Source: Magallana gigas
Lineage: Eukaryota
Assembly (NCBI RefSeq): GCF_963853765.1
Contig: NC_088854.1
Location: 24,800,001-24,864,000, forward strand
DNA: 64,000 nucleotides
Reading direction: 5' to 3'
Shown here piece after piece: positions 506 to 63,956 of this stretch (positions are counted from its first letter, which is position 1; each line of letters begins with the position of its first letter). The translations under genes and the position numbers were made by a program. The notes under the pieces were generated by a model, which worked only from the letters and a program-made list of their open reading frames with translations, was not told the DNA's origin and made no database searches.

Positions 506-563
506 ATGGATACCCTCTCCCTACTTGCGCTGCTCGTAGGCTTAGCCGTCTGTTCAGTTCATT
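506..563 (+). CDS. Coding exon 1: signal peptide MDTLSLLALLVGLAVCSVH(S)
   Basis: ATG at 506, hydrophobic core, phase-1 donor T|GTAAGT at 564. The polypyrimidine+AG at 491-499 suggests a non-coding exon further upstream. Confidence 0.85.
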
Positions 564-2439
564 GTAAGTTTTCTCTTTAAAAAAAACTCGACAATAAACA
601 CTTTAGTTTTGTATTATACTTGTGAGTAAAACAATGTCTTTTGTTGCTCGCTCAGTAAAATCATATCAGGACTTTGATTAGATTTTGGGTTATATGACAC
701 ATGCACTTGTTTCTGCATTGAAAGGCATGCGAATAGTATACTAAAGGGTAGACTTTACCGCAGAGACAAACTCCTGTGTTATAAATGTATAATGTTAAAT
801 TATTTAGGTATCATAGTTATGTAATATGAAACGACTTAACATCGGGAGTTACTCTAGAACCAAATAGATTCAGGGATAACTATACTATCATTATAATTTT
901 TACTGACCAAAATTTTATTTACGGGGTTTTGATTTAGAAAACACCATAGAAAACACCATTTAGTTTTATGAACACAAGTGAAAATAATGTATTGATTAAT
1001 CTTTAAGCGAATGCTTGTGTTGCACTGCAACATCATAAAGATATCATAATATAGTTTTCAAAAAATATTTTTGATGATAAATCCATGTAACTGGTTATTG
1101 CCCTTTGAATCTGTAGCTGTAGACCCACCGGACAATATTGGAAAGGAGTATGTACTGATGTTTATGGAAAACTTCAAATTAGAGAAAAATCGAAATTTTC
1201 CCCTGGAAGTTTACATCAGTACACCCGAAAAAACGCCAGCTCGTGTGACCATTAAATCACCCATTTCTGCCAATCCCCGGGTAGACCAAACAGTAACTGT
1301 TAATCCCGGCTCGGTGCAACGAGTGAACATAAGCGAGGCTTTCCGAATGGTAGGAAGCGTCCAATCCTCGAAAGGATTGCTGATACAGTCGGACCAGGAT
1401 ATAGCGGTGTATGGTGCTAACAAAGATACGTTGTCAAATGACGTGTATTGTGCGCTACCTGTAGACACGTTAGGCACCGAGTACTACGCTGCCTGCTATG
1501 GTCCAGCTCAGATTAAAACAGAACTTGGAGTCGCGTCCACTCAGGACAGCACCTCGGTAACAGTGACCCTTCCTAGCAAAGACAAATCCCTGACGGTCGA
1601 TTTTATGGGTAAAACGTATAAAGCTGGGGAAGTAATTCATACGAAATTGGACAAATACCAGACTTTACAACTTCAGAGTAGTCAGGATTTGACTGGGGCT
1701 CACATTGTAAGTGATAAACCAGTGGCTGCATTTAGTGGTAATATCAAAACAAATATCGGCACCGGAATATACGCTGACCATTTAGTAGAACAGTTGACCC
1801 CAGTTGATACGTGGGGTAAAAAATTTGTCACCGTTCCGATTCCAAAACGAACTACCGGGGATTTCTTCCGAATCATCGCCAGCGAGGACAATACTGAAGT
1901 TACAATTTCAGGCATGACCCCAATCAAGATTCCAAAAGCCGGAGAATGGGTACAAGTATCAATACCATCAGGCGAACATAAAATGGTTACATCTACTAAA
2001 CCGGTCATGCTAATGCAATACGTATTGAGTCAACAAAACGCCACGGAGCCTGCCGACCCTTCCATGATTACTATACCACCTTACGAGCTTTTTGGGGCCA
2101 AATATACCTTTTCAACACCTCAATACTCTCGGCCTGACTATGGTGCCGGATATTCCTACGAACACGAATTTATGGTCGTTGTCAAAGACGCAGACCGGAA
2201 TACGTTGCTTTTGGATGACAAACCGTTTCCATCGAACGCACATTGGACTACAATTCCAGGAACTGATCTTGTGGGTGGTTATGTTACCATTTCTGCAGGA
2301 TCCCATACTGTACGGAACACTGATCCCACGGCGCTCATTGGTGGATTTCTATACGGACATGCCTTTCACGAGTCTTATGGATTTCCAACCGGAATGCGAT
2401 TGGCTAAAATAAATGCCGTAAGTAGCTTTTGATTTCGAT

Positions 2440-2520
<81 letters not shown>

Positions 2521-5500
2521 CAAATAGGAAATGAACACATTGTTTGATTAAATGCAATGTTTAATTCCATGTCCTTAAAATTCAAGCATTTAGTCCCAAT
2601 ATAAAATATTACCAATAACAAGGCAATATAGAGTGACTATGACATCGTTCATGTAATGAAGCACATATTTTGCGAGGTTTAAAATTAGACGGATATTTTA
2701 TTAAGTAAATTTAGAAAATGTAAATCAATATCTTAGTAAATACTGTTGAATAACAATCAATTAAAGATTTTTTTATGAATAGTTTATGTTTCTAAGAATA
2801 AGTGGATGTCGATGTCTATATTTGATGTTACAAAGGTGTTACCAAAAGCAGCGCGACTGCTGGAGATCCACTCAGAATTGTTGATTTGCGAGGCATCATT
2901 TTTTTTTTAAGAGGGAGGGGGGAGGCAATTTTTTTTTCATTTTTGACTATTTTAAATAGTAACTTTATACTTAAACAGTTTCAAACCTCTAGTCGGGACT
3001 TTATTTTTAGCAGAAGAGCCGCGTTTGTTTTGCGTTAAGTGCAATATACTTAATATTTTAACAAATTAAAATTTCAGTTTTAAACAAAAATCTTTGAGAT
3101 TTATTTTACATATGAGTAAGGTAAATAAAAATTATGATTAAGTACTACGATTCAGATTACATTGAATGAATATAATTTTCCAAACAAACTACAAATTTTA
3201 CTAACTTTTGTAAACATCAATAAATAAACAGATTTAAATTCATTCATAATTTGAAATGTGATTTATTATTTTAAGAAAAAGATGTAGATGTCACATGATT
3301 AGTTATATTAAATGTTAATCCTTGAAAAACACCGACCTTGTCTTGACCTTCCTACGGTAGTGTAAAAGCCAACTTTAATTTAATTGATACTGCCAGTAAA
3401 TGATATCAGATTTTTGACTCCGTGAACTTTTAATAAATCTTTTAAAACATCAAACATAGGAAAAGGCAAACTGCAATGACAAGTTCGCCATACGATTTAA
3501 CAATAAAAAAAACCTCAACTGTATTCTAAAAGCAAGTAATGCCAAGTATACCATCACCAGTTTTTATGAACGTTGCTGATCTATAAGACCTTCACATGGA
3601 ATTGTTTACCGCCAGACAACATATTGGTGTCTTCAACATTTCCGCGATTTTGGGATAGTATTTAGAATAAAGGCCATTGTTAAGTAACGATAAATGAACT
3701 GAAAGCTGTTTTCTAAATTAGCATTTCCTCTAAATTGAAAAACAAATAAATAGAAAAATAAATAACATTTAACATAAGTTTGACTCTAAATTATAAGATT
3801 TTTTGTTACTAAATATAAATCAGAAGCGTGCAAAGTGGGAACTGTACTTATTTGACAATTGATTGCTTAAAAGGGCTGACTTGTAAAACAAAGCTTTTCT
3901 TTTTCGCATTAATTAAGTGTAACCTACTTTCTTCTAAGTTTACTCTCTCCTGAGTATTAATGATCGAAGGTGTGAAACGTTGTAAACTGTTTTTTCTCGA
4001 TAACTAATTGCCCAAAGGAGTTGACTTTAGATAAAAGCCTTGGTAAGAACCTCGTAATTTGATAAGAACCTCGTAAGTTGTTACATGTAGAACTATTTGT
4101 ATATGTTTATGTAATAAAAAATGTTCAAACGATAGAAACCTTTCTTTAACAGCCGTGTAAGAGAACGAGCCCAATCCCCGGGGACGGGATAGATAACGAT
4201 TGTGATGGAAAGATCGACGAGGAGTTATGTACACCAAGTAACAACAAGAGAGGTAGGTCCAATCAAGGATATACGATAAGCTCTGAATCCAAGTTTCTAG
4301 CGAAAAGGTAAAATCTCAGATCTGTATAACGGATATATATACGAAAGACGAAAAGGGCCACATTAAAAAATACTTTTATCTCGTAATTACGAGAAAAGAT
4401 CTCGTTATTACGAGTTAATTATCTCGTTATTACGAGAAAAGATCTCGTTATTACGAGTTAATTATCTCGTAATAACGAGAAAAGATCTCGTAATAACGAG
4501 TAAATTATCTCGTTATTACGAGAAAAGATCTCATAATAACAAGTAAATTATCTCGTTATTACGAGAAAAGATCTCATAATAACAAGTTAATTATCTCGTT
4601 ATTACGAGAAAAGATCTATTTAAAATGGCGCGTTTCATTGTTCTATTTTCTTGTGTATGAACTACTGCAATGTCTATTATTATACACTTCCGTAGCATAA
4701 TCATCGTTTAAAAGCTAACACATAATTTGATATAAAATTGGACCAAGCAGTTTTGAAGAAATTGCAGATGAAGTAGCAAAGCAGATTGATTAATAAATTG
4801 ATTGAACTGTTTATTAATAAAAAGGATACATGTAATTTGTTTCAGACTCCAAAATGTTATTATACAAAATCAATTATTTTCAATAAACATGTAGGTTGTG
4901 TATGAACATATAAAACACAATTCGGGTAAATGCTATATATCTATGATTGAAACTATATAATCATTAAAGTCCTCTGTAACTAACAGAATTGTGTTTTTAA
5001 ACGACTACCTGGTATTTACTTCGAAGTGGGATTATAATAATAATAATATAAGTTGAAAATTCGTTCCACTTATTCATATAAGATAAAATGTCAAATCCGA
5101 TCATTTTATGTAGAAGTTTATGAATAATGTGATTTAAAATTTAATCAAAATTAAATCGACGTTTCTGGAAAGAAAAAGTTAGACTGAAAGGGTGATCCAG
5201 TCGACTAGGAGGTCTTTTCACGCTCCATTTTATATAAATCTTTTCTCGTAATAACGAGATCTTTTCTCGTAATTACAAGATAATTAACTCGTAATAACGA
5301 GATCTTTTCTCGTATACTCGTAATAACGAGATCTTTTCTCGTAATAAGAGATCCTTTCTCGTAATTACGAGATAATTAACTCGTAATTACGAAATCTTTT
5401 CTCGTAATAACGAGATCTTTTCTCGTAATTACGATTTAAAAATATTTTTTATGTGGCCCTATTCGTCTTTCGTATATATAGTATACTGTTAAGTATATTT

Positions 5501-8500
5501 AAAATATATAAGTGATAAATATAGACTCAAATGTTTAACTTATTCAAATTTTCTCTGCTGGCTTATTAGGTTACACAATCCCGTTTGTGAACTTCTCGCG
5601 CTTACAAAATATTTCCATGGTTAAGAATGAAAACTAATTAATAAAAATAATATCTGTATAAAAAAAAAACACCGAGAAAAACAGAGAAAAAAAATAAAAT
5701 TGATTTTTTTTTCCAAGATGATGATCAAGATGGTGAGACGGATGAAGACTGTGCGTTACCCCTTCCAGGTGGGAATGTATAGAATAAGAATAAATGATTC
5801 AGATTAACAGTACATGCGATTTATTTACGGTTAAGTATATTCCCATACAAAAAGAAATATCAGCAGGATGTTTTGCAATTTAGATATTTTAAAATCACAA
5901 CTTATGCAATAATATAAGTATATTGTACTTTAGTTGATGGCGGGTGGTCAAACTGGCAAAGTTGGGGTCAGTGCACAGCCTCCTGTGAAAACGGAACCAT
6001 GGCGCGCCAAAGAACATGCGACAATCCTGCACCAGCGTACGGAGGCCAAAACTGTAGTGGGTCAGGCCAAGAGACGAAGCCCTGTGACACGGGGAAAGCT
6101 TGTCCAGGTTTGATTTTTTTAGCGATAAATTTTTGGTAAATTGATTACGTTGCAGTCGGTACTTATGTTGCATTGTGTAAAAGTTCTCTATCATAAAATC
6201 GCGGACAATTATTTGATAAGGGGTTTCTATACGTCGTCGCAATCAAACGCCATTTGAAGTGAATGTTTTGTATTGTAATGTTGTTTAAGGGTACATCAGT
6301 TTCACGATTACGTGTTTCCCTTTTTACAGTGGACATCGACGCAGTGTGTAAGAAGAATAAGACTGCTATTGTTGTCAACCCTTTCAACTGTGCTCAGTAT
6401 TACGATTGCTCCAAGCAAGTCTCGGCATTTGGAAAGCCGTACCTGCAGGAATGCAAATACCCTGACCTTTTTTCGTCTGGTACCAACTCATGTGAACCGT
6501 TTACATCGGTTACTGGAAGTTGTGGCAGAAGGAAAGAAGCCCAAGCGCCATGTAAAACACTTTATCTATTCTCGTACCTTCCATCTGGAATCATTTGAAA
6601 TGCAATAATTTATATATATAGAAACATATACTGTAAACGTGGTTATATTGACGAGTTCAAAATTTGACGATTTTTTAGTAAGAGACAATTGGCGAGTTTT
6701 AATTTTGACGAATATTTGAATAAGAGTAAGAGTTATTTATCTTTGATTTCTTATAATGCCAGGGTTAGGGTTATCTTTCTTTGATTAAATTGTATGATCC
6801 CTCAGTGTTCCTGGACAATGGAACAACTAGGCGCAAGACAAGTCAACTTCGCCGGCTTGGGGGATAAGCGACAAATCACCGCTTTGTTTTGTGTGACTCT
6901 AGATGGTCACTTATTACCCCCACAACTCATATATTAGGGAACTACATCTATGTGTCATCCAAATATAAACTTACGGATGATTGGGCAATTACCCACTCAC
7001 CTAATCACTGGTCTACCGAGGAAACGATGTTAGAGTACATTGAGGGGATTATCGTCCCGTATGTTGAGGCTGTTCGCGAATACCTACCCGTGGCACAAAT
7101 AAATCAACCGGCATTAGCTATTTTCGATGTGTTTGCAGCGCATATAAGCAAAAAAGTCTTATCAGCATTGAAAAAAGCTAACATTCGATATGTGTTCGTA
7201 CCGGCGGGTTGTACTGACGAATTACAGCCGCTAGATCAAACAGTTAATAAGAAATACAAAGACCTTCTCAAAACCGAATTTCAAAACTGGTACTCTGAGA
7301 AAGTTCGCCAGAAACTAGAAAATCAAAAGCCGGGGGAAAACATCGGCTATGTTGACATAGACATGAGAACGTCGACAATTAAACCGCTTCATGCAAAATG
7401 GATGCATAAAGTTCATGATGTTATCAGCAAGGATTGCGACTTTCTTGCGAACTCTTTTACAAGCGTTGGTATTAATAAAATTAAACTTTGATTGAAAAAA
7501 AAGTCTGTACAGATTTGATGGAATAAAATTGTTCTTTGTATTTTGTTTTTATTCACTATACGATATTGCCTGAGGTAACAAAGTAGGTCAAACACGGCAT
7601 GATAATTACGCACGCAAAGTTATTATAGAATGTTGTGACGATTGAGTGATAATTGCATTTAAAACATGCTTGTTTAGATTTTATGGGTTTTTTCAATGCT
7701 AATTACGTGTTTTGTATCATTAACTTTGATCTAGTCCTAACGGGATAATGCCGATAAAAAATTCTGGTATTAATACGCTCTATATATGATGTGAAGTTTG
7801 GCGAGTGGAAATTTTGACGAGAAAACAAAAATCGCCAACATAGTCAAAATTAACACATCGTCAAAATTTCCACGTTTACAGTATTATATCTATCAGTAAT
7901 TCAATATTGCTACTGGCCATAGTTGTTTACCACTTGATAATTACCAATTAATAATATCATATTGTCTTGACCGTGTCTTTGCAGGTGATTACGTTCAAAA
8001 TAAATGTAATTCTACTGACCCAACTTGTGAACCCTGCCCAAAACGATTACCATCGTGTGTTGGACTACCTGATGGCAAACAGATATTTCCAGGAAAGCAG
8101 CTTGCTCCAGATTATATTGAATGTCAACAAAACAGGACAATGGAGGTCAAGAAATGTCATTTGCAATATTTTAATCCCCAGATGAAAGATTGCAAAAATT
8201 ATTCCCGACGTAAGTATCATTGCATTAAAATGTCAACATTTTGTTTATTAACGTTTTGTCAGCATTTTGATTTTTAAAAGAGTCCCCGGCGTCGTTTAGA
8301 TTGTCGTTGTCAGCAGCGTTAGTTTTTCAATTTTTATATATATTCTTTCCTAGAACCACTCAGCCAGATTCAACCATAGTATTTACATGTAGGAGGTTGT
8401 TAAAAAGAGAAAAAACGATTATTTTTGAAAATCGCACTTATAAAAAAACTACAAATATATTGTAATTTTGAAGAATTTTTTTCTAAAGAACACACGAACC

Positions 8501-11500
8501 AAACTTTTAACGTTTCAAACAAATATTTTTTAAAATAAAGAATAATTTAAAGTCTACTTAAACTGAACCTCATTGACCATTAAAAAAGAGATTGGAGCAA
8601 ATGAAAAAATGCAAATTTCTACACAATAATGTAAAGAGGGAAATTCTACATAGGAAAATGTAGGGGAAATATACAAGCACCCCTCTCATGCAAGCAGCAT
8701 ATTGTTTTAAATCAGATACAAATATTTGATCCCGGTTGTGGTGGCATTAAAAGTTTAGAGATATACACTTACGTTTTTAGGTGATACAAAAAGGAAATTC
8801 TACCTCAGACTAGTAGTGTGACAGACTGGCCTCTGGATTTTTTTGCGTTGATTTTAGTTTGCTTAATCTATGTTTTCTTTGTTTGATAGCTGTTTTAAAC
8901 TTTCTGTGCTCAAAAAACCAGTCGGCTGCCATTCCGGATCCTGCAAATTGTGCCAAATATTATGACTGCTCTAAACTGTTCACGTCGACGACTCTTCAAG
9001 ATATGACAACGGAATGCAAATACCCGGATCTATTCTCTGTAAAAGATGGCAAGTGCCAGGACTTCAAAAGTGTTAATTGCACCACAAGAAAAGAACCAAT
9101 GGCACCATGTATGTTATTCTTTTCTGTATTCTCATTGAAAATCACGAAACAAATGGTTGAATCCTCCAATTCGTTATGAACTTATATCATTTTGTTTAAT
9201 TAATTAAGCGATACTGTAACATATGGTTATTTATTCATACAAACGAATATATTTGCTTGCCATTTCAAGACCAACATACGAAAAAGTTACGAAAACGTTT
9301 AAATAATGAACAACCTGAGCCTATTTATTTTTCTCTCGATTTTTCAGTTGTTATAGCCAGTTTTTATTTTCGTTCAACTTTAAAAGAAAAAAAAATGAAT
9401 TCCCTAAAGTTCAAACACCAAGTCGCAAGAGGAAAACATTTTAGTAAAAACCTTATCATTATGTCACATGCAATACTAGTACTAGTATGTACCATAATGC
9501 AATAAAGAATAAATCCGCTCTCCCCTGTCACAACATTTGCTGAAATTAAAAGAATGTGTTTTTTCGAGTCCTTTGTGCGATTTAAAAAGTTTCCAAAAGT
9601 AAATGATAACGATATTATTTGTATGTTTGCAACGTGAAAGTAAACGAAAATTGTATCATTGCAAAAATAATTGGATGGCTATGGTATGAATAATAATATA
9701 CACATTCTTCGAATTTTAAACAAAAAAACCCCAACCTTTTCTTTTATGTGCTTCTATCAGCAGTTGTCACCACACGTATTTTCTGTTACATGTATGATAG
9801 CAATATATACAATTTGCCCTTATAGATATAACACAATTAAGTTTAAAACATAATTTAAAAATAATTCATTTCAGGCGAATATGAGCAGAATCTGTGTCCA
9901 GCCAACAACCCGTCCTGCGCTCCCTGTCCTAAACGTCTGCCGTCTTGCATTACTTTGCCTGATAATCAGGAGGCGTTTCCAGGAAAATTATGGCAAGCAG
10001 ATTACATTGTGTGCGACACCAATAGAACCATGAATATAACTACGTGTCCTCAAGGAGAATATTTCAATCCCAGACTAAAGAAATGCATGAAATCTGTTCC
10101 CCCAGGTAAACCAGCTATCTGTTGATTTACGTGTCACTCTTTCTACTAAAGATTCGGCGGATTGAAATAAATTCATTTGAAAATGAGACTCAAATATGGA
10201 AACCGCAATAATCAAAGAATTTCCAATTTTACTTTTCAGTGGACGTTCCGGACTACTGCTCAGCTCATCCCAAAGCGCTGCTACCAAAAGAGGACAACTG
10301 CGGCCAATACATCAATTGTTCAGATCCAGGATTTGATGGGAATCACACCATGGAGTGTCAGTATCCTGATCTTTTCTCTGTGACCACCATGTCGTGCCAA
10401 TGGTTCGAGAATGTGACCTGTGATAGTCGTATGGAGCCACAAGCACCTTGTGAGTAGTTTGTTCGATCATTTTGCTTTGGAAGAAGTATCATTATAATTA
10501 AATGAGTCTATAAAAGTCCCATTTTCCTCGTTTGTCCCTGATAGGCGAGTACCATCAAAACCAATGTGCACCGACAAACAAGAGTTGCATCCCTTGCAAA
10601 AAGAGACTCCCAAGTTGTGTGACATTATCTGATGGAAAGAATGCCATTGATTGGTTGCTCTGGAAACCTGATTATGCCGAATGTTACAAGAACAGGACCA
10701 TGAAAATGGAGAAATGTCCCACTCGCTTCTTTGATCCAGTTCAGAGAAAATGTACCGACAAGGCCAACCCAGGTGAGTGTCGCATTTTGATCTGTGTGTG
10801 ACACACAGCTGTGTTGATTACACCACATGTTTGAAAAGTTGAAATCACTTTCTGTGTTTGTTTATTAATATCATTTTATTTATCTTTAGGCGATATTGAC
10901 GAAATCTGCAAACAGAACCCCAAAGCCATTTTGCGGAAGAAAGATAACTGTGCTCAGTATTACAACTGTTCCGTATCTAACTCCTCCTATGGAGGTCACT
11001 TGCAGGAATGTAAATATCCGGATCTGTTCTCCACCGTCAGTATGGAATGTGAAAATTTCAAGACTGTAACTTGTGACAACAGAACAGAACCCCAGGCTCC
11101 ATGTGAGTTTTGAAGGATATGAGGACAAGTATTTGAATGATTTTCTAACTAATTATGACGTTCCGTCAAAATGTGGTAATGTGTTTTGTATTTACAAATG
11201 ATTATGTATAATTCAGGTGAATATGTTCAGAATATGTGTCCAGCCAACAACCCGTCCTGCGCTCCCTGTCCTAAACGTCTGCCGTCTTGCATTACTTTGC
11301 CTGATAATCAGGAGGCGTTTCCAGGAAAATTATGGCAAGCAGATTACATTGTGTGCGACACCAATAGAACCATGAATATAACTACGTGTCCTCAAGGAGA
11401 ATATTTCAATCCCAGACTAAAGAAATGCATGAAATCTGTTCCCCCAGGTAAACCAGCTATCTGTTGATTTACGTGTCACTCTTTCTACTAAAGATTCGGC

Positions 11501-14500
11501 GGATTGAAATAAATTCATTTGAAAATGAGACTCAAATATGGAAACCGCAATAATCAAAGAATTTCCAATTTTACTTTTCAGTGGACGTTCCGGACTACTG
11601 CTCAGCTCATCCCAAAGCGCTGCTACCAAAAGAGGACAACTGCGGCCAATACATCAATTGTTCAGATCCAGGATTTGATGGGAATCACACCATGGAGTGT
11701 CAGTATCCTGATCTTTTCTCTGTGACCACCATGTCGTGCCAATGGTTCGAGAATGTGACCTGTGATAGTCGTATGGAGCCACAAGCACCTTGTGAGTAGT
11801 TTGTTCGATCATTTTGCTTTGGAAGAAGTATCATTATAATTAAATGAGTCTATAAAAGTCCTATTTTCCTCATTTGTCCCTGATAGGCGAGTACCATCAA
11901 AACCAATGTGCACCGACAAACAAGAGTTGCATCCCTTGCAAAAAGAGACTCCCAAGTTGTGTGACATTATCTGATGGAAAGAATGCCATTGATTGGTTGC
12001 TCTGGAAACCTGATTATGCCGAATGTTACAAGAATAGGACCATGAAAATGGAGAAATGTCCCACTCGCTTCTTTGATCCAGTTCAGAGAAAATGTACCGA
12101 CAAGGCCAACCCAGGTGAGTGTCGCATTTTGATCTGTGTGTGACACACAGCTGTGTTGATTACACCACATGTTTAAAAAGTTGAAATCACTTTCTGTGTT
12201 TGTTTATTAATATCATTTTATTTATCTTTAGGCGATATTGACGAAATCTGCAAACAGAACCCCAAAGCCATTTTGCGGAAGAAAGATAACTGTGCTCAGT
12301 ATTACAACTGTTCCGTATCTAACTCCTCCTATGGAGGTCACTTGCAGGAATGTAAATATCCGGATCTGTTCTCCACTGTCAGTATGGAATGTGAAAATTT
12401 CAAGACTGTAACTTGTGACAACAGAACAGAACCCCAGGCTCCATGTGAGTTTTGAAGGATATGAGGACAAGTATTTGAATGATTTTCTAACTAATTATTA
12501 CGTTCCGTCAAAATGTGGTAATGTGTTTTGTATTTACAAATGAGTATGTATAATTCAGGTGAATATGTTCAGAATCTGTGTCCAGCCAACAACCCGTCCT
12601 GCACTCCCTGTCCTAAACGTCTGCCTTCTTGCATTACTTTGCCTGATAATCAGGAGGCGTTTCCAGGAAAATTATGGCAAGCAGATTACATTGTGTGCGA
12701 CACCAATAGAACCATGAACATAACTACGTGTCCTCAAGGAGAATATTTCAATCCCAGACTAAAGAAATGCATGAAATCTGTTCCCCCAGGTAAACCAGCT
12801 ATCTGTTGATTTACGTGTCACTCTTTCTACTAAAGATTCGGCGGATTGAAATAAATTCATTTGAAAATGAGACTCAAATATGGAAACCGCAATAATCAAA
12901 GAATTTCCAATTTTACTTTTCAGTGGACGTTCCGGACTACTGCTCAGCTCATCCCAAAGCGCTGCTACCAAAAGAGGACAACTGCGGCCAATACATCAAT
13001 TGTTCAGATCCAGGATTTGATGGGAATCACACCATGGAGTGTCAGTATCCTGATCTTTTCTCTGTGACCACCATGTCGTGCCAATGGTTCGAGAATGTGA
13101 CCTGTGATAGTCGTATGGAGCCACAAGCACCTTGTGAGTAGTTTGTTCGATCATTTTGCTTTGGAAGAAGTATCATTATAATTAAATGAGTCTATAAAAG
13201 TCCTATTTTCCTCATTTGTCCCTGATAGGCGAGTACCATCAAAACCAATGTGCACCGACAAACAAGAGTTGCATCCCTTGCAAAAAGAGACTCCCAAGTT
13301 GTGTGACATTATCTGATGGAAAGAATGCCATTGATTGGTTGCTCTGGAAACCTGATTATGCCGAATGTTACAAGAATAGGACCATGAAAATGGAGAAATG
13401 TCCCACTCGCTTCTTTGATCCAGTTCAGAGAAAATGTACCGACAAGGCCAACCCAGGTGAGTGTCGCATTTTGATCTGTGTGTGACACACAGCTGTGTTG
13501 ATTACACCACATGTTTAAAAAGTTGAAATCACTTTCTGTGTTTGTTTATTAATATCATTTTATTTATCTTTAGGCGATATTGACGAAATCTGCAAACAGA
13601 ACCCCAAAGCCATTATGCGGAAGAAAGATAACTGTGCTCAGTATTACAACTGTTCCGTATCTAACTCCTCCTATGGAGGTCACTTGCAGGAATGTAAATA
13701 TCCGGATCTGTTCTCCACTGTCAGTATGGAATGTGAAAATTTCAAGACTGTAACTTGTGACAACAGAACAGAACCCCAGGCTCCATGTGAGTTTTGAAGG
13801 ATATGAGGACAAGTATTTGAATGATTTTCTAACTAATTATGACGTTCCGTCAAAATGTGGTAATGTGTTTTGTATTTACAAATGAGTATGTATAATTCAG
13901 GTGAATATGTTCAGAATCTGTGTCCAGCCAACAACCCGTCCTGCACTCCCTGTCCTAAGCGTCTGCCTTCTTGCATTACTTTGCCTGATAATCAGGAGGC
14001 GTTTCCAGGAAAATTATGGCAAGCAGATTACATTGTGTGCGACACCAATAGAACCATGAACATAACTACGTGTCCTCAAGGAGAATATTTCAATCCCAGA
14101 CTAAAGAAATGCATGAAATCTGTTCCCCCAGGTAAACCAGCTATCTGTTGATTTACGTGTCACTCTTTCTACTAAAGATTCGGCGGATTGAAATAAATTC
14201 ATTTGAAAATGAGACTCAAATATGGAAACCGCAATAATCAAAGAATTTCCAATTTTACTTTTCAGTGGACGTTCCGGACTACTGCTCAGCTCATCCCAAA
14301 GCGCTGCTACCAAAAGAGGACAACTGCGGCCAATACATCAATTGTTCAGATCCAGGATTTGATGGGAATCACACCATGGAGTGTCAGTATCCTGATCTTT
14401 TCTCTGTGACCACCATGTCGTGCCAATGGTTCGAGAATGTGACCTGTGATAGTCGTATGGAGCCACAAGCACCTTGTGAGTAGTTTGTTCGATCATTTTG

Positions 14501-50500: not shown

Positions 50501-53500
50501 AAATATATTCATGCATATTCCTTGTGTATACCATACGGACTAACATTTAAGAACAAAAGGAAGAATTTAATCTCATCTTTACTTTGCATTGATATTGTAC
50601 ATATCTTTACTTATACTAGGTGAATATCTGCAAAATCTGTGTACTGGAAAGAACAAGAACTGTCAGCCATGCACTGAGAGACTTCCTAGCTGTATAGGAC
50701 TACCAAATGGCTTCAATCCAATTATGGAGTCTCTGTGGAAAAAAGACTATATTGAATGTAAAGACAATAGAACAGTCGCTGTAAAATCCTGTACGAACGG
50801 GGTATTTGATCCTTACAACAGGGAGTGTATGAAAGGTAAGCTATTGTATATCACTTAAACATTGCGTCCATGTTATGTATTAAAAGTCTAGTAACATCGT
50901 AATGTAACTATTATTTGTGTTTGTAGATACTGTATCCAGTTATTGTATGATACACCCAAGGGGGTCCCTACCTAACCCCCAAAACTGTGCCCAGTTTTAT
51001 GACTGCAGTGTAAGGGATTCAGAGTATGGATTATATCTGAAAGAATGCCAATATCCCCTGCTGTATGAAATAGAGACGGGCACCTGTCAACACTACAGTA
51101 AAGTGAACTGTGGGTCACGATATGAACCTGTAGAACCATGTAAGTAATTCTTAACATAACTGCAGAACCTTTTTGTAGTTTTCAAAAGCATGAACACATG
51201 AACAACATACATTTCTTAACACAATAGTCTTAACTATTTGACGGAAAATCAATAACAAAGCTGTTATAGTTTAATGACAATTGAGATTAATTTAAAAACA
51301 ATATAGCAAAAGCAATAAAATGTTCTATTCACTTTTACGCCTAAATGCCTGGTTTGACGAATGCATCAAATTTACATTCAATTTTGTTTCAATCAAAAGT
51401 AGATCAAACTGAGTATATGAAATAACTAGAATATGTATAACCCTACACTACAATCATCAACATCAAAGTGAAAAATCTTTATACGTTTGTCCCTTTTTCT
51501 GCGAAAAGAAATGAAAATAAAGATGAACAGATATATAGATAAGTACCAATTAAAAGTAACAGCCAGTTTTGTTGTGACATTACAGGTGAGTATATTCAGA
51601 GTCAGTGTATCGGTGCTGGTTGTCCGGCCTGCAGCCAGGTCAGTTGCCGCACTCACCCTGATGGAGCCAATGAATACCCTGGCAGGAAGCACACCCCGTG
51701 GTACGTGGTGTGTGAGAATGGAAGAACTGTGGCCGTGGAACAGTGTCACGTGGGAATTTTTGACCAGCAGTCTCGCATGTGTTTGACTAATACAGGTAAA
51801 TTTGCTGGTGAGATATACGAAGAACAGAAGACAATTTCAGAGTTGTTTTTTTGGATAATGTGAAAATAAATGAGAAATATATATTTAGTAGATTGTGTAA
51901 AAGGCAATAAAGAGGCTTTGTATTAATGAAAGCATGTGTTGCATCAATATTCTGTATGTGTAAAATAAGATAATTCATAATGCTTGTTAAACATTTATTG
52001 GATTTTTATTATCTGTAGTTGTGTAATAGATAATATGTTAACACTAACCAAATACTCATTTAGCCACAACATTAACAATCAATATCAACGCAATTCTTAT
52101 ACATAATTAACAAAACAGGTTTAGCTTATTATAACGAAGTGATTTTAATCTTTTGTATTAAAAAAAAGAACTTTAAACTCTGGTTGTAACACGTTTTTGA
52201 TTGGCTAAATAAATCCAACTATATATTTGGCGCGTTTGCTTTACGTATGAATTCTTTTGATGCTGCATTTAGGAGGTATGGAACACCATCATATTATGAC
52301 ATACTTATACATTGTAATTTCTTCCAAAATAGAAACAATTGAGAAAAATAGTTGACACATTTTTCTATCATTTGTGTCTCTCACTGCGTAGTGCAATAGA
52401 TTAAAGGAATCTCTATCATTTTGTAAGTCATCAGTTAGAATTCATCTGAGGCTGAGGCATTTTTTACTTTTGTAAAATATTTTCAAAAACATTTTATGGT
52501 CATTTACTGTACAATTTTAGAACGCCGGAAATTTTTTATAATTATAAACTTTCATCGATATTAACATCTACATCCCTTTTCTCTTTAAATTTCCTATAAA
52601 TTAACGCCATTTTACATAATGCGTCTTATTTTCTTAAGTTAATATATTAACTTGAATTAATTTGTACTTATATTCTATAATAAAAGCACAACTGGGACAG
52701 TTTCCGCTGACTCAAAAATATGTTATACAGATAAAATAAAAAATATTGAATAAAAGTTGTAAAAATTCGATGATTAAATTCATTCATTTTATTAAATTTT
52801 TAAACATTAATTTTTAGCAAATCAAAAGCTCCTTTTTAAAAAGAATAAGTAGATTCGTCTGAAATATTTAACTTCATATAATATGTTTTACAATGCAATT
52901 ACAACGTAGAAAACCATTTGTTTAGCCAATCAAATGAAATTTAAAACTAAAAAACTTCTTACTAGTACCTATCAGCTGCCATTGTATACAATTGCAGGCT
53001 CTATAAATGACTACTGTGAGCGGAATCCCGGACTGGTTTTCCCAAGCTTTGCAAGCTGTGCACAGTTTTACGAGTGTGGCCGATACAATGACATAACGGG
53101 GACCTATCTGCACGAATGTGCTTATCCATTGCTGTATGACACCGCCTCAAAAACGTGTCAACACTTCACCAAAGTAAAATGTGACAAAAGGAATGTCCCT
53201 TATGCACCATGTCAGTATACACAAAGTGCCTGATAAGAAATTTAAAATTTTCCATCAATGTTGACACTTAAAGATATTTAATTACACATTTTTCTTTTAA
53301 TTAGGTGACTATATGCAAAATAGATGTCATGAAAGAAATACAACGTGCAAACCTTGTGATGAAAGGTTCATTTCCTGTGTAAACAAACCCGATGGTAGAA
53401 ATGAAGTGCCAGGAGACATATACTCGTATGTTTATTGTCTCCAGAATAGGACAATCAACAGAGTCATGTGTTCACAGGGTGCATTCTTTCATCCGTTAGT

Positions 53501-63500: not shown

Positions 63501-63821
63501 CTGTCATAAGCACATTTAGTATTTGAGTAAAATATACATTCTTTGAAAATGCATAAATGTGTCAATTGTAGATTTCAAAAGTATATACCGGTATGTGAAG
63601 AGAGTACAATATAAATGCTTGATCTTTGATTCACAGATTGTGTGAAGGACTGTAAGGGTAAAGCCAGTGGCGAGTACCAGTCTTGCAAGACATGTGGGGG
63701 ATATGTGACGTGTGTCTGGGGCATACTGTACGAGCGCCAGTGTCCAGCTGGACTGGAATGGAATGACAATCTCAAAGTGTGTGACTGGCCAAACGCGGCA
63801 GGGTGTGCGTTAGCGGGTTAG
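506..63821 (+). CDS. Giant secreted multi-domain chitin-binding-type protein (~8,150 aa, 108 coding exons): SP - IgGFc-binding N domain - acidic motif - TSP1 - 49x(CBM14 'P' + Cys linker + 4-Cys CBM14-like 'Q') - F5/8C discoidin - N/S/T stalk - CBM14
   Basis: Every inferred intron is GT-AG and phases are compatible at each junction. Exon lengths sum to 24,453 nt (1,684 N-terminal + 21,747 array + 1,022 C-terminal) = 8,151 codons including TAG 63819-63821. AATAAA at 63951-63956. Single-gene continuity is inferred from phase compatibility and from finding no other start, signal peptide or terminal stop exon in between. Confidence 0.85.
1117..2417 (+). CDS. Coding exon 2: IgGFc-binding protein N-terminal (FCGBP-N) domain
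   Basis: ORF 1071-2432 has family-typical motifs (DNIGKEYVLMFMEN, LPVDTLGTEYY, DHLVEQLTPVDTWGKKFVTVP, DPSMITIPP, SYGFPTGMRL). Acceptor TAG|CT at 1116/1117, phase-0 donor GCC|GTAAGT at 2417/2418. Confidence 0.9.
2444..2517. repeat. (TC)n microsatellite, ~37 units
   Basis: Uninterrupted TC tract in the intron just after exon 2. Confidence 0.97.
4153..4252 (+). CDS. Coding exon 3: PCKRTSPIPGDGIDNDCDGKIDEELCTPSNNKR, acidic putative metal-binding motif (not in ORF track)
   Basis: ACAG|CCG phase-0 acceptor, AGAG|GTAGG phase-1 donor; GDGIDNDCDG..DE motif. Confidence 0.85.
4342..5472. mobile_element. Non-autonomous TIR (foldback-like) element with subterminal tandem arrays
   Basis: Left end CGAAAGACGAAAAGGGCCACAT and right end ATGTGGCCCTATTCGTCTTTCG are inverted, inside TATATA flanks. 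Arrays of ~21/43-bp units (TTATTACGAGAAAAGATCTCG / TTATTACGAGTTAATTATCTCG) at ~4375-4620 are mirrored at ~5240-5435. Confidence 0.8.
5718..5768 (+). CDS. Coding exon 4 (51 nt): DDDQDGETDEDCALPLP, second half of the acidic motif
   Basis: Poly-T CCAAG|AT acceptor, CCAG|GTGGG donor, phase 1-1. Confidence 0.8.
5934..6107 (+). CDS. Coding exon 5: thrombospondin type-1 (TSP1) repeat (not in ORF track frame)
   Basis: Translates VDGGWSNWQSWGQCTASCENGTMARQRTCDNPAPAYGGQNCSGSGQETKPCDTGKACP, with canonical WxxWxxW, CxxxC and RxRxC; phase 1-1. Confidence 0.93.
6330..9108 (+). CDS. First array exons: P 6330-6551, Q 7985-8209, P 8890-9108 (CBM14-type domains)
   Basis: P exons have six Cys with peritrophin-A spacing (C-x13-C-x5-C-xn-C-x12-C-x7..9-C). 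The Q exon reads CDYVQNKC...CEPCPKRLPSC...NRT...YFNP...C. All phase 1-1. Confidence 0.88.
6631..7881 (+). mobile_element. Internally deleted pogo-like (Tc1/mariner superfamily) DNA transposon
   Basis: TIRs CTGTAAACGTGG..TTGACGA (6631) and TCGTCAAAATTTCCACGTTTACAG (to 7881), flanked by TA on both sides; encloses a DDE_1 transposase remnant. Confidence 0.88.
6809..7491 (+). pseudogene. DDE_1 (pogo/Tigger-type) transposase remnant
   Basis: WTMEQLGARQV..GDKRQITALF..LPPQLIY*G (TAG 6935-6937), then a frameshift into THSPNHWS..IFDVFAAH..VPAGCTDELQPLD. No room for the N-terminal DNA-binding region. Confidence 0.85.
9875..18156 (+). repeat. Tandem array of a 1,341-1,343-bp four-exon unit (6 full copies + a 7th exon A)
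   Basis: Exon A starts at 9875, 11217, 12559, 13901, 15242, 16583, 17926. Exons and introns are near-identical, with scattered SNPs and small indels. Confidence 0.97.
9875..18156 (+). CDS. 25 array exons within the tandem expansion (Q,P,Q,P x6 + Q)
   Basis: U1 9875-10105, 10240-10449, 10545-10772, 10890-11102; U2 11217-11447, 11582-11791, 11887-12114, 12232-12444; U3 12559-12789, 12924-13133, 13229-13456, 13574-13786; U4 13901-14131, 14266-14475, 14572-14799, 14915-15127; U5 15242-15472, 15607-15816, 15913-16140, 16256-16468; U6 16583-16813, 16948-17157, 17254-17481, 17599-17811; last 17926-18156. All GT-AG, phase 1-1. Confidence 0.88.
18292..30639 (+). CDS. Array exons, post-expansion modules 1-12 (alternating P/Q)
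   Basis: 18292-18534, 18945-19175, 19755-19994, 20424-20654, 20748-20948, 21258-21488, 21589-21804, 22284-22511, 22779-23018, 23213-23443, 23614-23853, 24152-24382, 24650-24850, 25413-25643, 26635-26844, 27148-27375, 27651-27905, 28022-28249, 28354-28593, 28880-29110, 29208-29402, 29641-29871, 30054-30263, 30409-30639. Each length is a multiple of 3; Cys patterns conserved. Confidence 0.88.
26037..26367. mobile_element. ~330-bp MITE-like element containing a tRNA-derived segment
   Basis: Imperfect TIRs AGGTGATATGGGACATCT (26037) and AGGTGTCCCATACCACCT (26350-26367). GGCATATATAGG is repeated at both ends. On the minus strand ~26200-26267 has A-box-like ACAGTGGGTTAGAG and B-box GAGTTCGAATCCC. 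Confidence 0.55.
30818..43200 (+). CDS. Array exons, post-expansion modules 13-25 (module 20 is a fused P+Q exon)
   Basis: 30818-31057, 31576-31806, 32141-32341, 32683-32910, 33050-33262, 33412-33645, 34044-34256, 34365-34595, 34714-34926, 35067-35297, 35693-35890, 36328-36555, 36680-36895, 36987-37217, 37384-37824 (fused), 38143-38343, 38622-38852, 39825-40037, 40490-40717, 40958-41170, 41257-41484, 41573-41779, 42088-42321, 42439-42651, 42970-43200. Confidence 0.88.
38928..39580 (+). mobile_element. Decayed Helentron-like non-autonomous element with ~160-bp internal repeats
   Basis: Start TTTATAGCTCACCCGAACCGAATGTTCAAGTGAGTTCTTCTGATCA resembles the 57218 element. Diverged repeated blocks (AAACCATG..CCCCA..GTTCAAAGTTTAACA); 3' end uncertain. 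Confidence 0.6.
43511..53529 (+). CDS. Array exons, post-expansion modules 26-35
   Basis: 43511-43720, 43843-44070, 44161-44373, 44547-44774, 44973-45185, 45554-45781, 45884-46087, 46940-47161, 47311-47523, 47727-47957, 48164-48370, 48508-48735, 49079-49291, 49883-50104, 50251-50469, 50620-50835, 50927-51139, 51586-51795, 52998-53210, 53305-53529. Confidence 0.86.
45323..45490. mobile_element. Tc1/mariner-type MITE, right TIR truncated
   Basis: TA|CAGTTGAACTTCGATATCTCGAACA with internal CGATATCTCGAA repeats. The right end TGTTCGAGATAACGAAGT matches the inverted left end but lacks its last ~7 nt. Confidence 0.65.
46167..46742. mobile_element. ~575-bp non-autonomous TIR element
   Basis: AAGGACTATGTGCGG..GCCCCC at left, GGGGGC..CCGCACTTAGTCCTT at right (14/15 terminal match). 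No clean TSD seen. Confidence 0.65.
56975..57183 (+). CDS. F5/8 type C (discoidin) domain, exon 1 of 3
   Basis: DICNQQLVSG..VPDSAFSASSSY..ARIN..GAWSAQ..DQWIQ. Acceptor TTAG|AT (phase 1), donor CAG|GTGAG (phase 0). Confidence 0.9.
57218..57670 (+). mobile_element. 3'-truncated Helentron-associated (HINE/DINE-1-like) element
   Basis: TTTTTAGCTCACCTGAGCTGAAAGCTCAAGTGAGCTATTCTGATCAC head, (GTCC/GTCT)n microsatellite, then two diverged ~165-bp monomers. Confidence 0.8.
57688..57902. mobile_element. ~215-bp MITE-like element
   Basis: GGTAAAATGGGTA at left and TACCCATTTTACC at right (13-bp perfect inverted ends, extending imperfectly). Confidence 0.55.
58494..58590. repeat. Perfect palindrome, 48-bp arms with 1-nt spacer
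   Basis: AACAATTAAACACAAGAAACATGCACTACATGTATAACAAATAAAGAA - C - exact reverse complement. Confidence 0.95.
59127..60575 (+). mobile_element. Helentron-like element carrying ~6.5 monomers of a ~166-bp Cg170-like satellite
   Basis: 5' TTTTTAGCTCACCTGAG; monomer marker AGGAAAGC at ~59231, 59395, 59561, 59726 (variant), 59893, 60058. 3' subterminal CTCAGGTGAG (inverse of the 5' CTCACCTGAG), hairpin GGCCCATGGGCC, end CTCTTGTT. Cg170 assignment is from recall. Confidence 0.85.
60803..60964 (+). CDS. F5/8 type C domain, exon 2 of 3
   Basis: VNLSEPSLIRGIMTQGR..QWVKKYRVQYSMD..W; phase 0-0 (TTAG|GTG, ACA|GTCAGT). Confidence 0.88.
62495..62642 (+). CDS. F5/8 type C domain, exon 3 of 3 (not in ORF track)
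   Basis: IFVGNTDENSIVTNNFDCPVIAKCIRVNPLDWNNHISMRFDLLGC, the canonical discoidin C-terminus; phase 0-1. Confidence 0.92.
62975..63247 (+). CDS. Low-complexity Asn/Ser/Thr/Ala stalk exon (not in ORF track on +)
   Basis: TCAG|GA acceptor, AGTG|GTAAAA donor, 273 nt open; GNSTSAPPTTAASNSTAPANGTT...NMTSAAMTTQSATS. Confidence 0.85.
63376..63420 (+). CDS. 45-nt linker exon AGATTVSNNSKTGAG
   Basis: TTTAG|CT acceptor, GGAA|GTAAGT donor, phase 1-1. Confidence 0.75.
63637..63821 (+). CDS. Terminal exon: canonical CBM14 (chitin-binding type 2) domain + stop
   Basis: NCVKDCKGKASGEYQSCKTCGGYVTCVWGILYERQCPAGLEWNDNLKVCDWPNAAGCALAG*. Confidence 0.92.
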
Positions 63822-63950: not shown

Positions 63951-63956
63951 AATAAA
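63951..63956 (+). promoter_or_regulatory. Candidate polyadenylation signal AATAAA
   Basis: First AATAAA after the stop (130 nt downstream), followed by T/GT-rich sequence. Confidence 0.55.

Follow-up and report, generated by a model that had tools for sequence, protein, structure and literature searches.

Mollusc shells are built on an organic framework of chitin, which is also found in the lining of parts of the gut. To our knowledge, the known molluscan proteins that attach to it, such as Pif/BMSP and the small peritrophin-like proteins, carry one to a few binding modules each. The window analyzed here, a stretch of 64,000 nt from the oyster Magallana gigas (RefSeq assembly GCF_963853765.1, contig NC_088854.1, positions 24,800,001 to 24,864,000), contains on its plus strand a series of 108 exons (positions 506 to 63821) that encode 99 domains of the CBM14 type, all except the terminal one arranged in a tandem array. 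These exons constitute one gene, the product of which is probably a very large, secreted, disulfide-rich glycoprotein that bridges chitin fibrils, with the ends of the chain tying the network to other glycoproteins or to the epithelium. A conserved protein with ~80 to 100 modules and distinct adaptor ends would be an obvious candidate for the main chitin cross-linker of molluscan matrices.

Insect peritrophins and intestinal mucins are likewise secreted proteins in which tandem CBM14 arrays are combined with Ser/Thr-rich segments and which cross-link chitin fibrils; the oyster protein shares with them the tandem CBM14 domains and a mucin-like segment. Insect peritrophins have 1 to 16 chitin-binding domains (CBDs) (PMC7663561), compared with 99 here. 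However, insect peritrophins have no IgGFc_binding, TSP1, or discoidin ends, whereas the oyster protein has all three, and its array is built of two divergent subtypes, A and B, that alternate along the chain. Very long CBM14 arrays are also typical of the nematode proteins of the CBD-1/chondroitin proteoglycan 2 type, which serve in the eggshell or cuticle. In one of these, the 4,993-amino-acid (aa) Toxocara canis protein P0009, 45 stretches match the oyster domains, but only through the CBM14 core (profile positions 19 to 72); the cysteine knot that is specific for type B does not match, and the end domains are different.

Vertebrate FCGBP and the gel-forming mucins resemble the oyster protein in being huge, secreted, of the mucosal type, and built of Cys-rich repeats, and FCGBP has the N-terminal PF17517 domain in common with it. 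However, the repeats of FCGBP are VWD-C8-TIL units, whereas those of the oyster protein are of the CBM14 type. Membership in the FCGBP family was rejected, as no VWD, C8, or TIL domain was found by Pfam and all 108 exons are assigned elsewhere. Pif and BMSP, molluscan shell proteins that attach to chitin by CBM14, are defined by VWA domains and a mineral-binding part (PMC6231486, PMC3374290). This assignment was also rejected, since Pfam found no VWA domain in either the window gene or its Crassostrea virginica counterpart (protein P0307, see below) and there is no acidic mineral-binding region.

Relatives of the oyster protein are present among the shell proteins of three gastropods. The same alternating A and B domains, with seven full-length B matches (E value of 4.6e-69), are found in the Lottia gigantea protein Lotgi1|231869 (P0007), which ranks among the major proteins of the acid-soluble shell matrix (PMC3374290). 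This protein is much shorter (~1,061 aa) and contains a Pro-rich spacer, and no IgGFc_binding, TSP1, or discoidin domain was found in it by Pfam. The Haliotis shell protein idb_1745 has been described as "Similar to IgGFc-binding protein, SSP; chitin-bd_II (23x)" (PMC6003135), and isotig 14003 from the Cepaea shell has its best match in a CBM_14-containing C. gigas entry named "IgGFc-binding protein" (PMC4023409).

Reconstruction of the gene and its domain array

In stop-to-stop open reading frames (ORFs), the plus strand shows a long series of Cys-rich segments of 70 to 80 residues. Base-level reading of one repeat unit revealed that each array segment is one exon flanked by AG and GT, with split codons at its edges (two bases at the start and one at the end), so that the introns are in phase 1. 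The gene was rebuilt independently of the original prediction, which had been made from the sequence alone: open exons with phase 1 on both sides were listed and filtered by two cysteine patterns, and the ends were determined by splice-site reading. The filtered search yielded 94 array exons, and four breaks in the alternation of A and B domains were filled by inspection (37384-37824, 42088-42321, 44161-44373, and 50620-50835). To control for chance, the search by exon and cysteine pattern was also applied to the minus strand and to three shuffled sequences; it returned 101 acceptor sites on the plus strand and none in any of these controls. The resulting model consists of the following elements:

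506..563, plus strand: exon 1, start codon and signal peptide MDTLSLLALLVGLAVCSVH, donor site gtaagt, phase 1 (sequence reading)
1117..2417, plus strand: exon 2, N-terminal IgGFc_binding domain, PF17517 (Pfam E 3.6e-69, profile positions 3-293 of 297)
4153..4252, plus strand: exon 3, Cys/Asp-rich motif PCKRTSPIPGDGIDNDCDGKIDEELC (splice sites and frame; same peptide in C. virginica P0307)
5718..5768, plus strand: exon 4, Asp-rich motif DDDQDGETDEDCALPLP (splice sites and frame; conserved in P0307)
5934..6107, plus strand: exon 5, thrombospondin type 1 repeat (Pfam TSP_1, E 1.2e-12)
6330..53529, plus strand: 98 CBM14-type domains on 97 exons with phase 1 on both sides (cysteine-pattern exon search, frame)
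10240..18291, plus strand: six tandem units of 1,342 bp with four exons each (A-B-A'-B'), 24 domains (pairwise comparison)
37384..37824, plus strand: fused A+B exon, intervening intron lost (continuous ORF with 15 Cys; two stretches of Pfam CBM_14, E 3.5e-9)
42088..42321, plus strand: degenerate B domain without the first two cysteines, frame intact (inspection of alternation gap)
44161..44373, plus strand: degenerate A domain, two cysteines lost, frame intact (inspection of alternation gap)
50620..50835, plus strand: B exon that fills an alternation gap (inspection)
56315..56354, plus strand: alternative first exon, coding end (RNA piece 55120-56354; GT..AG joint 56354>56573 in runs X1 and X11)
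56573..56599, plus strand: 27-nt linker exon (GHIPLAIGD), common to the long and short forms (RNA joints 53529>56573 and 56599>56975; same peptide in P0307)
56975..57183, plus strand: F5/8 type C (discoidin) exon 1 of 3 (RNA contig piece, the unaligned end of which corresponds to the beginning of exon 2 of 3 at 60803)
60803..60964, plus strand: F5/8 type C exon 2 of 3 (Pfam PF00754, E 3.2e-9, profile positions 40-87)
62495..62642, plus strand: F5/8 type C exon 3 of 3 (Pfam PF00754, E 3.2e-6, profile positions 86-125; donor site read)
62975..63247, plus strand: Ser/Thr-rich, mucin-like spacer of 91 aa with many N-x-S/T sequons (composition)
63637..63821, plus strand: last exon, canonical CBM14 (63637-63818), then the stop codon (Pfam CBM_14, E 2.1e-12)
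63951..63956, plus strand: AATAAA polyadenylation signal, 130 nt past the stop codon (sequence)

All 107 introns of this model are of the GT..AG type, 104 of the 108 exon ends are in phase 1, and the coding sequence of 24,435 nt has no internal stop codon. The predicted chain of 8,144 aa (918 kDa, isoelectric point of 6.5, 710 Cys residues, 170 N-x-S/T sequons) comprises, in this order, the signal peptide, the IgGFc_binding domain, two Asp-rich motifs, the first of which can be inferred to be calcium-binding-like, the TSP1 repeat, 49 A/B pairs, the F5/8 type C domain, the Ser/Thr-rich stretch (49 Ser/Thr and 11 sequons in the 100 aa from the start of its exon), and the canonical CBM14. The original prediction of 108 exons with an intact frame for ~8,150 aa and ~0.9 MDa, including 98 array domains plus one terminal CBM14, was reproduced, and Pfam scans yielded IgGFc_binding, TSP_1, CBM_14, and F5_F8_type_C. 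The prediction had overlooked the A/B alternation, the recent sixfold amplification of a part of the array, and the internal promoter that would give rise to a short C-terminal isoform.

The alternation is strict across the entire array, which comes to 49 pairs; the 98 domains occupy 97 exons because one A+B pair is fused. Type A domains (~70 aa) contain six conserved Cys residues plus one from the split codon at the 3' end and cover the whole CBM_14 profile, with the best E value of 8.8e-7; C6, C20, C26, C50, C63, and C71 are invariant or at least 90% conserved, and aromatic residues are conserved at F/Y23, Y52(57), and one further F/Y position. Type B domains (~76 aa) have seven Cys residues and consist of an N-terminal Cys knot, E-Y-x-Q-N-x-C-x6-C-x2-C-x-x-R-L-P-S-C, followed by the CBM14 core; all seven are invariant or at least 90% conserved, together with Y2, W41, F/Y45, and F63(66).

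With the gathering score of Pfam entry PF01607 (22.1 bits) taken as the threshold for CBM14 membership, the terminal domain is far above it at 47.4 bits, two type A domains score 29.4 and 22.8 bits, and others 20.8 to 21.7 bits. Type B domains receive 14.6 to 28.2 bits, always for a partial match that includes only profile positions 17 to 53. The family as a whole is recognized as CBM14, with single array copies straddling the gathering score. In agreement with this assignment, an AlphaFold model of type B built on an alignment of 39 distinct paralogs (predicted local distance difference test [pLDDT] score of 83.8) gave the CBM14 domain of CHIT1 (5hbf/6so0) as the best Foldseek match, with a probability of 1.00 and root mean square deviations of 1.8 to 2.8 Å (1.8 Å over 53 residues). 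The other matches were Aplysia EHEP, which ranked second, Der p 23, tachycitin, Blo t 12, and Avr4. Judging from this model, type B has the CBM14 fold, a small beta fold of the tachycitin/hevein-like kind. A single-sequence model of the fused A+B exon was discarded for its low pLDDT of 44.

Outside the block of six near-identical units, the array domains are only ~45% identical to each other, with the Cys and aromatic positions invariant. Maintenance of the frame, the cysteines, and the aromatic residues at such a level of mutual identity argues for long-term selection on the whole array. Super-repeat periodicity in this old part of the array is weak, with 47% identity at lag 4 versus ~44 to 45% at other lags.

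Transcripts, orthologs, and paralogs

The likeliest place for a gene boundary is the stretch of 3 kb without exons that separates the array from the discoidin exon, and RNA contigs were examined over the region around it (51500-57400). In runs from three studies, they contain the GT..AG joints 51795>52998, 53210>53305, 53529>56573, and 56599>56975, which fall exactly on the predicted splice sites; the 27-nt linker exon was first revealed by these contigs. A single contig of 5,749 nt (run X5) combines the last three array exons (51586-53529), the linker, and the discoidin exon, which places the array and the discoidin end on one mRNA. This contig extends beyond its placed part by 4,017 nt upstream and by 844 nt downstream. 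The latter length fits the 768 nt of the remaining coding sequence plus a 3' untranslated region. Provided that contig and model are collinear, the former would take the contig back to exon 81, near 42.57 kb. Over its 3' third, the gene is transcribed and spliced as one RNA. The single-gene reading of the original prediction is upheld by the intact frame, the RNA joints, the 5,749-nt contig, and the presence of the whole architecture in one RefSeq protein of C. virginica. Junction reads across all introns had also been proposed as a check, and for the region 51500-57400 the RNA contigs bear out the predicted joints. The raw-read run X21, of which ~1% was sampled, gave almost no coverage of the gene and carried no information on its start, end, or strand.

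The same region revealed an alternative first exon. In the last 40 nt of a 1.2-kb RNA piece, the ATG at 56315 opens the sequence MEFFLYTFGLILL(W), which is spliced in frame to 56573. The predicted product is a secreted short isoform of 347 aa that consists of a signal peptide, the F5/8C domain, the Ser/Thr-rich stretch, and the terminal CBM14.

A search with the B-domain profile against 1.84 billion representative proteins produced 767 matches. Full-length matches with species names come from molluscs only, both bivalves (Sinanodonta, Tegillarca, Potamilus, Pecten, Solemya, and a Magallana gigas paralog) and gastropods (Lottia, Nucella, Bulinus, Babylonia, and Physella), and all of them are annotated as hypothetical or uncharacterized. 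The Pecten protein P0159 could be assigned to no contig. Every part of the gene is found in a single model from C. virginica, LOC111123822 isoform X3 (P0307, 6,763 aa, "uncharacterized"), which is ~60% identical to the rebuilt protein and collinear with it over ~6,300 to 6,550 aa. Its domain order is the same from the signal peptide to the terminal CBM14 (by Pfam, IgGFc_binding, TSP_1, CBM_14, and F5_F8_type_C, the last with an E value of 1.2e-25), and the junction peptides KINA|PC, LPLP|VDG, FFG|H.PLA.GD|DICNQQ, and WIQ|VNLSE are identical. The exon 1 junction has its equivalent (..VYS|VDPPDNIGKEY) both in P0307 and in the Saccostrea cucullata RefSeq model P0166. P0307, which is a computational model only, differs in having 40 B domains instead of 49 and no recent six-unit amplification.

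In Sinanodonta woodiana, four abutting models on the same strand, ~320 bp apart and together ~9,550 aa long, represent the same gene in pieces: IgGFc_binding, TSP1, and CBM14 in 1,140 aa, two CBM14 arrays of 3,101 and 1,337 aa, and CBM14 plus F5_F8_type_C in 3,975 aa. The gene is similarly fragmented in Tegillarca, where KUTeg_006031 contains IgGFc, TSP1, and both A and B domains and the flanking genes contain only further CBM14 fragments. When the long models were used as queries, P0307 and models from three further genera were retrieved. Those from Mactra (5,319 aa) and Dreissena (LOC127859481, 4,237 to 4,564 aa) include the N-terminal end and the array, and the 5,281-aa model from Mytilus edulis includes the array, F5/8C, and the terminal CBM14. 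The same architecture is thus seen in all five genera, often split between models. Sequence comparison identifies the gene as the ortholog of C. virginica LOC111123822 and indicates that its architecture is conserved across bivalve orders. The expected fragmentation by automated annotation is seen in Sinanodonta, Tegillarca, and Saccostrea cucullata but not in the RefSeq models of C. virginica and Dreissena.

The protein collection yielded no annotated full-length protein from M. gigas itself, which may reflect the collection or masking. The entries that are 95 to 100% identical to the rebuilt protein are unnamed single-exon ORFs from Logan contigs, and the two named M. gigas entries (A0A8W8J0X8 of 268 aa and an "uncharacterized protein isoform X2" of 1,815 aa) are ~34% identical and were set aside as paralogs. 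The literature search found no name, function, or publication for LOC111123822. No paper describing the gene was found in the searchable literature, and searches on chitin-binding proteins of the crystalline-style proteome, LOC127859481, and K1PRD3 gave only the shell-proteome papers cited above. The original claim of novelty is weakened, since the same architecture is already present in the databases as an uncharacterized RefSeq ortholog; what is distinctive is the conservation of this architecture and the extreme size of a peritrophin-like multi-CBM14 protein. With annotations that split it, no name, and only fragments in the proteomics databases, the gene is nearly invisible, and its peptides surface as minor "IgGFc-binding protein-like" or "chitin-binding" entries. 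With the full-length model, the proteomes of shell, mucus, and gut can be searched anew, and knock-down experiments have a defined target.

The genome searched for paralogs comprises 564 Mb in 29 contigs, with the window corresponding to C2:24,800,001-24,864,000. All 49 B exons of contig C2 are located inside the window. PF17517 exons are numerous (at least 66 single-exon copies), many of them in tandem clusters at C1:39.6-40.9 Mb, C8:27.35-27.44 Mb, and C2:17.7-17.8 Mb, but only at the window locus does one adjoin an A/B array. Smaller B-type arrays are found at C8:4848613-4971562 on the minus strand (at least 11 B exons) and at C4:13838300-13883659 (at least six), with no PF17517 exon nearby. 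These arrays probably are the "uncharacterized protein" models of 1.8 to 2.1 thousand aa known from M. gigas and Saccostrea and perhaps correspond to the Lottia shell protein 231869. A tree of 105 B domains (76 alignment columns), in which 64 of the 102 branches were left open, does not discriminate between an ancient array and independent expansions; the interleaving of domains from different species is no more than a hint of the former.

Ligand, site of action, and competing readings

As a chitin cross-linker, the protein would be secreted into a chitin-containing extracellular matrix, in which its 99 tandem modules would bind fibrils at many points and a single chain would bridge and bundle many of them. 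The two ends, IgGFc_binding/TSP1 on one side and the discoidin/mucin stalk on the other, might link the network with further glycoproteins or with the epithelium that secretes the protein. The presence of 99 modules of a fold with chitin-binding members on a secreted, knotted, N-glycosylated chain, in combination with a lectin domain and a mucin-like stalk, points to a multivalent chitin cross-linker, a plausible design by analogy with peritrophins but six times longer. By comparison with the gastropod proteins, the most likely site of action would be the shell-forming secretome (mantle, shell matrix, and periostracum). The second choice is a chitinous gut lining, the gastric shield of the oyster stomach, which is chitinous (PMC4457423), or mucus.

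Several observations weigh against this reading, and they concern the transcripts, the shell link, and the ligand. Read support covers positions 51500-57400, downstream of exons 1 to 80, and contigs of short reads are in any case unable to separate the six near-identical units. In run X1, the contig depth is 195 at the discoidin exon versus 45 to 54 at the array exons, which suggests that more of the short isoform than of the long form may be made. RefSeq isoforms of the Dreissena gene end or switch at the borders of domain exons: X4 and X5 part precisely where an A exon meets a B exon and stop within the array, in agreement with cassette-type splicing.

These data fit a scheme in which the locus is a single gene whose 8,144-aa chain is seldom, if ever, produced; through alternative promoters, cassette-exon skipping, and early termination, it would yield a set of far shorter products, the 347-aa discoidin-mucin-CBM14 protein among them, with the array serving as a combinatorial source of isoforms. 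The first exon with its own ATG and hydrophobic leader, spliced to 56573 in two runs, is in line with it, as are the excess of discoidin over array depth, the phase 1 at 104 of the 108 exon ends, which makes runs of array exons skippable in frame, the Dreissena isoforms, and the eight member sequences of the C. virginica cluster. However, in its placeable part, the 5.7-kb contig runs through consecutive array exons without skipping (51586>52998>53305>56573), RefSeq builds an isoform of 6,763 aa in C. virginica, and the preservation of 98 open frames with nearly all cysteines at ~45% identity would be expected only if all of them are translated. This scheme is regarded as unlikely, although it is the alternative that survives best.

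With respect to the site, the Lottia protein P0007 matches the window gene and its paralog at C8:4.85-4.97 Mb equally well, and the relatives in gastropod shell proteomes may be orthologs of the smaller paralogs, so that the link to the shell is to the family and is not proven for the window gene. The Haliotis protein is of low abundance and could be occluded mucus.

As for the ligand, the 98 array domains are divergent, with Pfam scores on both sides of the cut-off, and the C-D-W-P motif is kept by the last domain only (aa 8132). The Foldseek E values are modest (5e-3 and weaker, albeit with a probability of 1.00 for the first six matches), and the CBM14-like Aplysia protein EHEP binds phlorotannins, not chitin (PDB 8in3/8in6 titles). 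It is conceivable that the modules have the CBM14 fold but a different ligand (glycans or mucins, polyphenols, or microbial surfaces) and that the protein is an agglutinin of mucus or the gut lumen or a gel-forming barrier. The absence of C-D-W-P from the array, the second rank of EHEP, a digestive-fluid protein crystallized with tannic acid, among the structural matches, and the combination of an N-terminal IgGFc_binding domain, a discoidin lectin domain, and a mucin-like spacer, which is typical of mucosal proteins, all favor such a role. Against it, the conserved aromatic positions are kept in both A and B domains, members of the family were recovered from decalcified shell matrices of three gastropods, and the best structural match is the CBM14 of chitotriosidase. 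A ligand other than chitin is considered quite improbable.

Within the cross-linker reading, a more specific version has the protein as a conserved single-chain template for the molluscan chitin framework, roughly a quarter of a micrometre long, in which each of the 49 A-B pairs would engage a fibril at a fixed spacing and so set the fiber spacing or sheet thickness of the shell or periostracum. Changes in the copy number of the four-exon cassette would tune this geometry between individuals and species, and the short isoform would cap the long form or compete with it. This version is doubtful and is offered as speculation.

Recent amplification of the array and repeats in the introns

Pairwise, the six 1,342-bp units are 98.5 to 99.8% identical, introns included. 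Variable sites number 14 of 882 in the exons and ~16 of 461 in the introns, so that the exons vary about half as often. The ~30 substitutions and indels that distinguish the units form a nested pattern (units 1 to 3 versus 4 and 5 versus 6), and from these sequence differences, the units look like real, very recent copies. It is highly improbable that they are a mis-expanded repeat of the assembly and that the true protein is ~1,800 aa shorter: the near-identity of the units, introns included, and the smaller number of B domains in C. virginica (40 versus 49) would agree with such an artifact, but ~30 nested differences are expected of real diverging copies and not of duplicated reads, Sinanodonta has a similar block, and even without the six units, 74 array domains and an intact frame would remain.

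The block in the S. woodiana ortholog (CM100983.1:20.94-20.99 Mb) is likewise near-identical, with 30 B domains in two models, only eight of which are distinct. Taken together with the six oyster units, it indicates that recent internal amplification recurs in distant bivalves. Almost every exon is a domain cassette in phase 1, a structure that allows tandem amplification, of which this gene, with six units that are ~99% identical, is a clear and ongoing case. It probably allows exon skipping as well, and the protein length likely varies between individuals and isoforms. As 24 of the 98 domains belong to the near-identical units, the precise number of domains hinges on the assembly and the individual; the number of the 1,342-bp units may differ between individuals.

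Several introns contain repeats or mobile elements. A perfect (TC)37 microsatellite (2444-2517) lies 27 nt past the donor site of the IgGFc_binding exon. The introns flanking exon 3 contain 43-bp tandem arrays (4376-4617 and 5238-5434) with the inverted motif CTCGTTATTACGAG / CTCGTAATAACGAG, a repeat that is MITE-like (miniature inverted-repeat transposable element) or hairpin-forming. Within the 1.4-kb intron that separates the first A from the first B exon, a 207-aa ORF on the plus strand (6868-7488) matches the DDE_1 transposase (PF03184, E 1.6e-10) and is probably a fragment of a pogo/Tigger-type element inserted in the gene. Downstream of the first discoidin exon, the intron stretch 57213-57400 shows contig word depths of 13,000 to 66,000 in all four RNA runs and hundreds of raw reads with varied flanks, which looks like a transcribed repeat of very high copy number, such as a short interspersed nuclear element (SINE) or the end of a transposable element. 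The same intron, between discoidin exons 1 and 2, also harbors a 166-bp tandem repeat (59146-60227; 6.5 copies, 86% matches).

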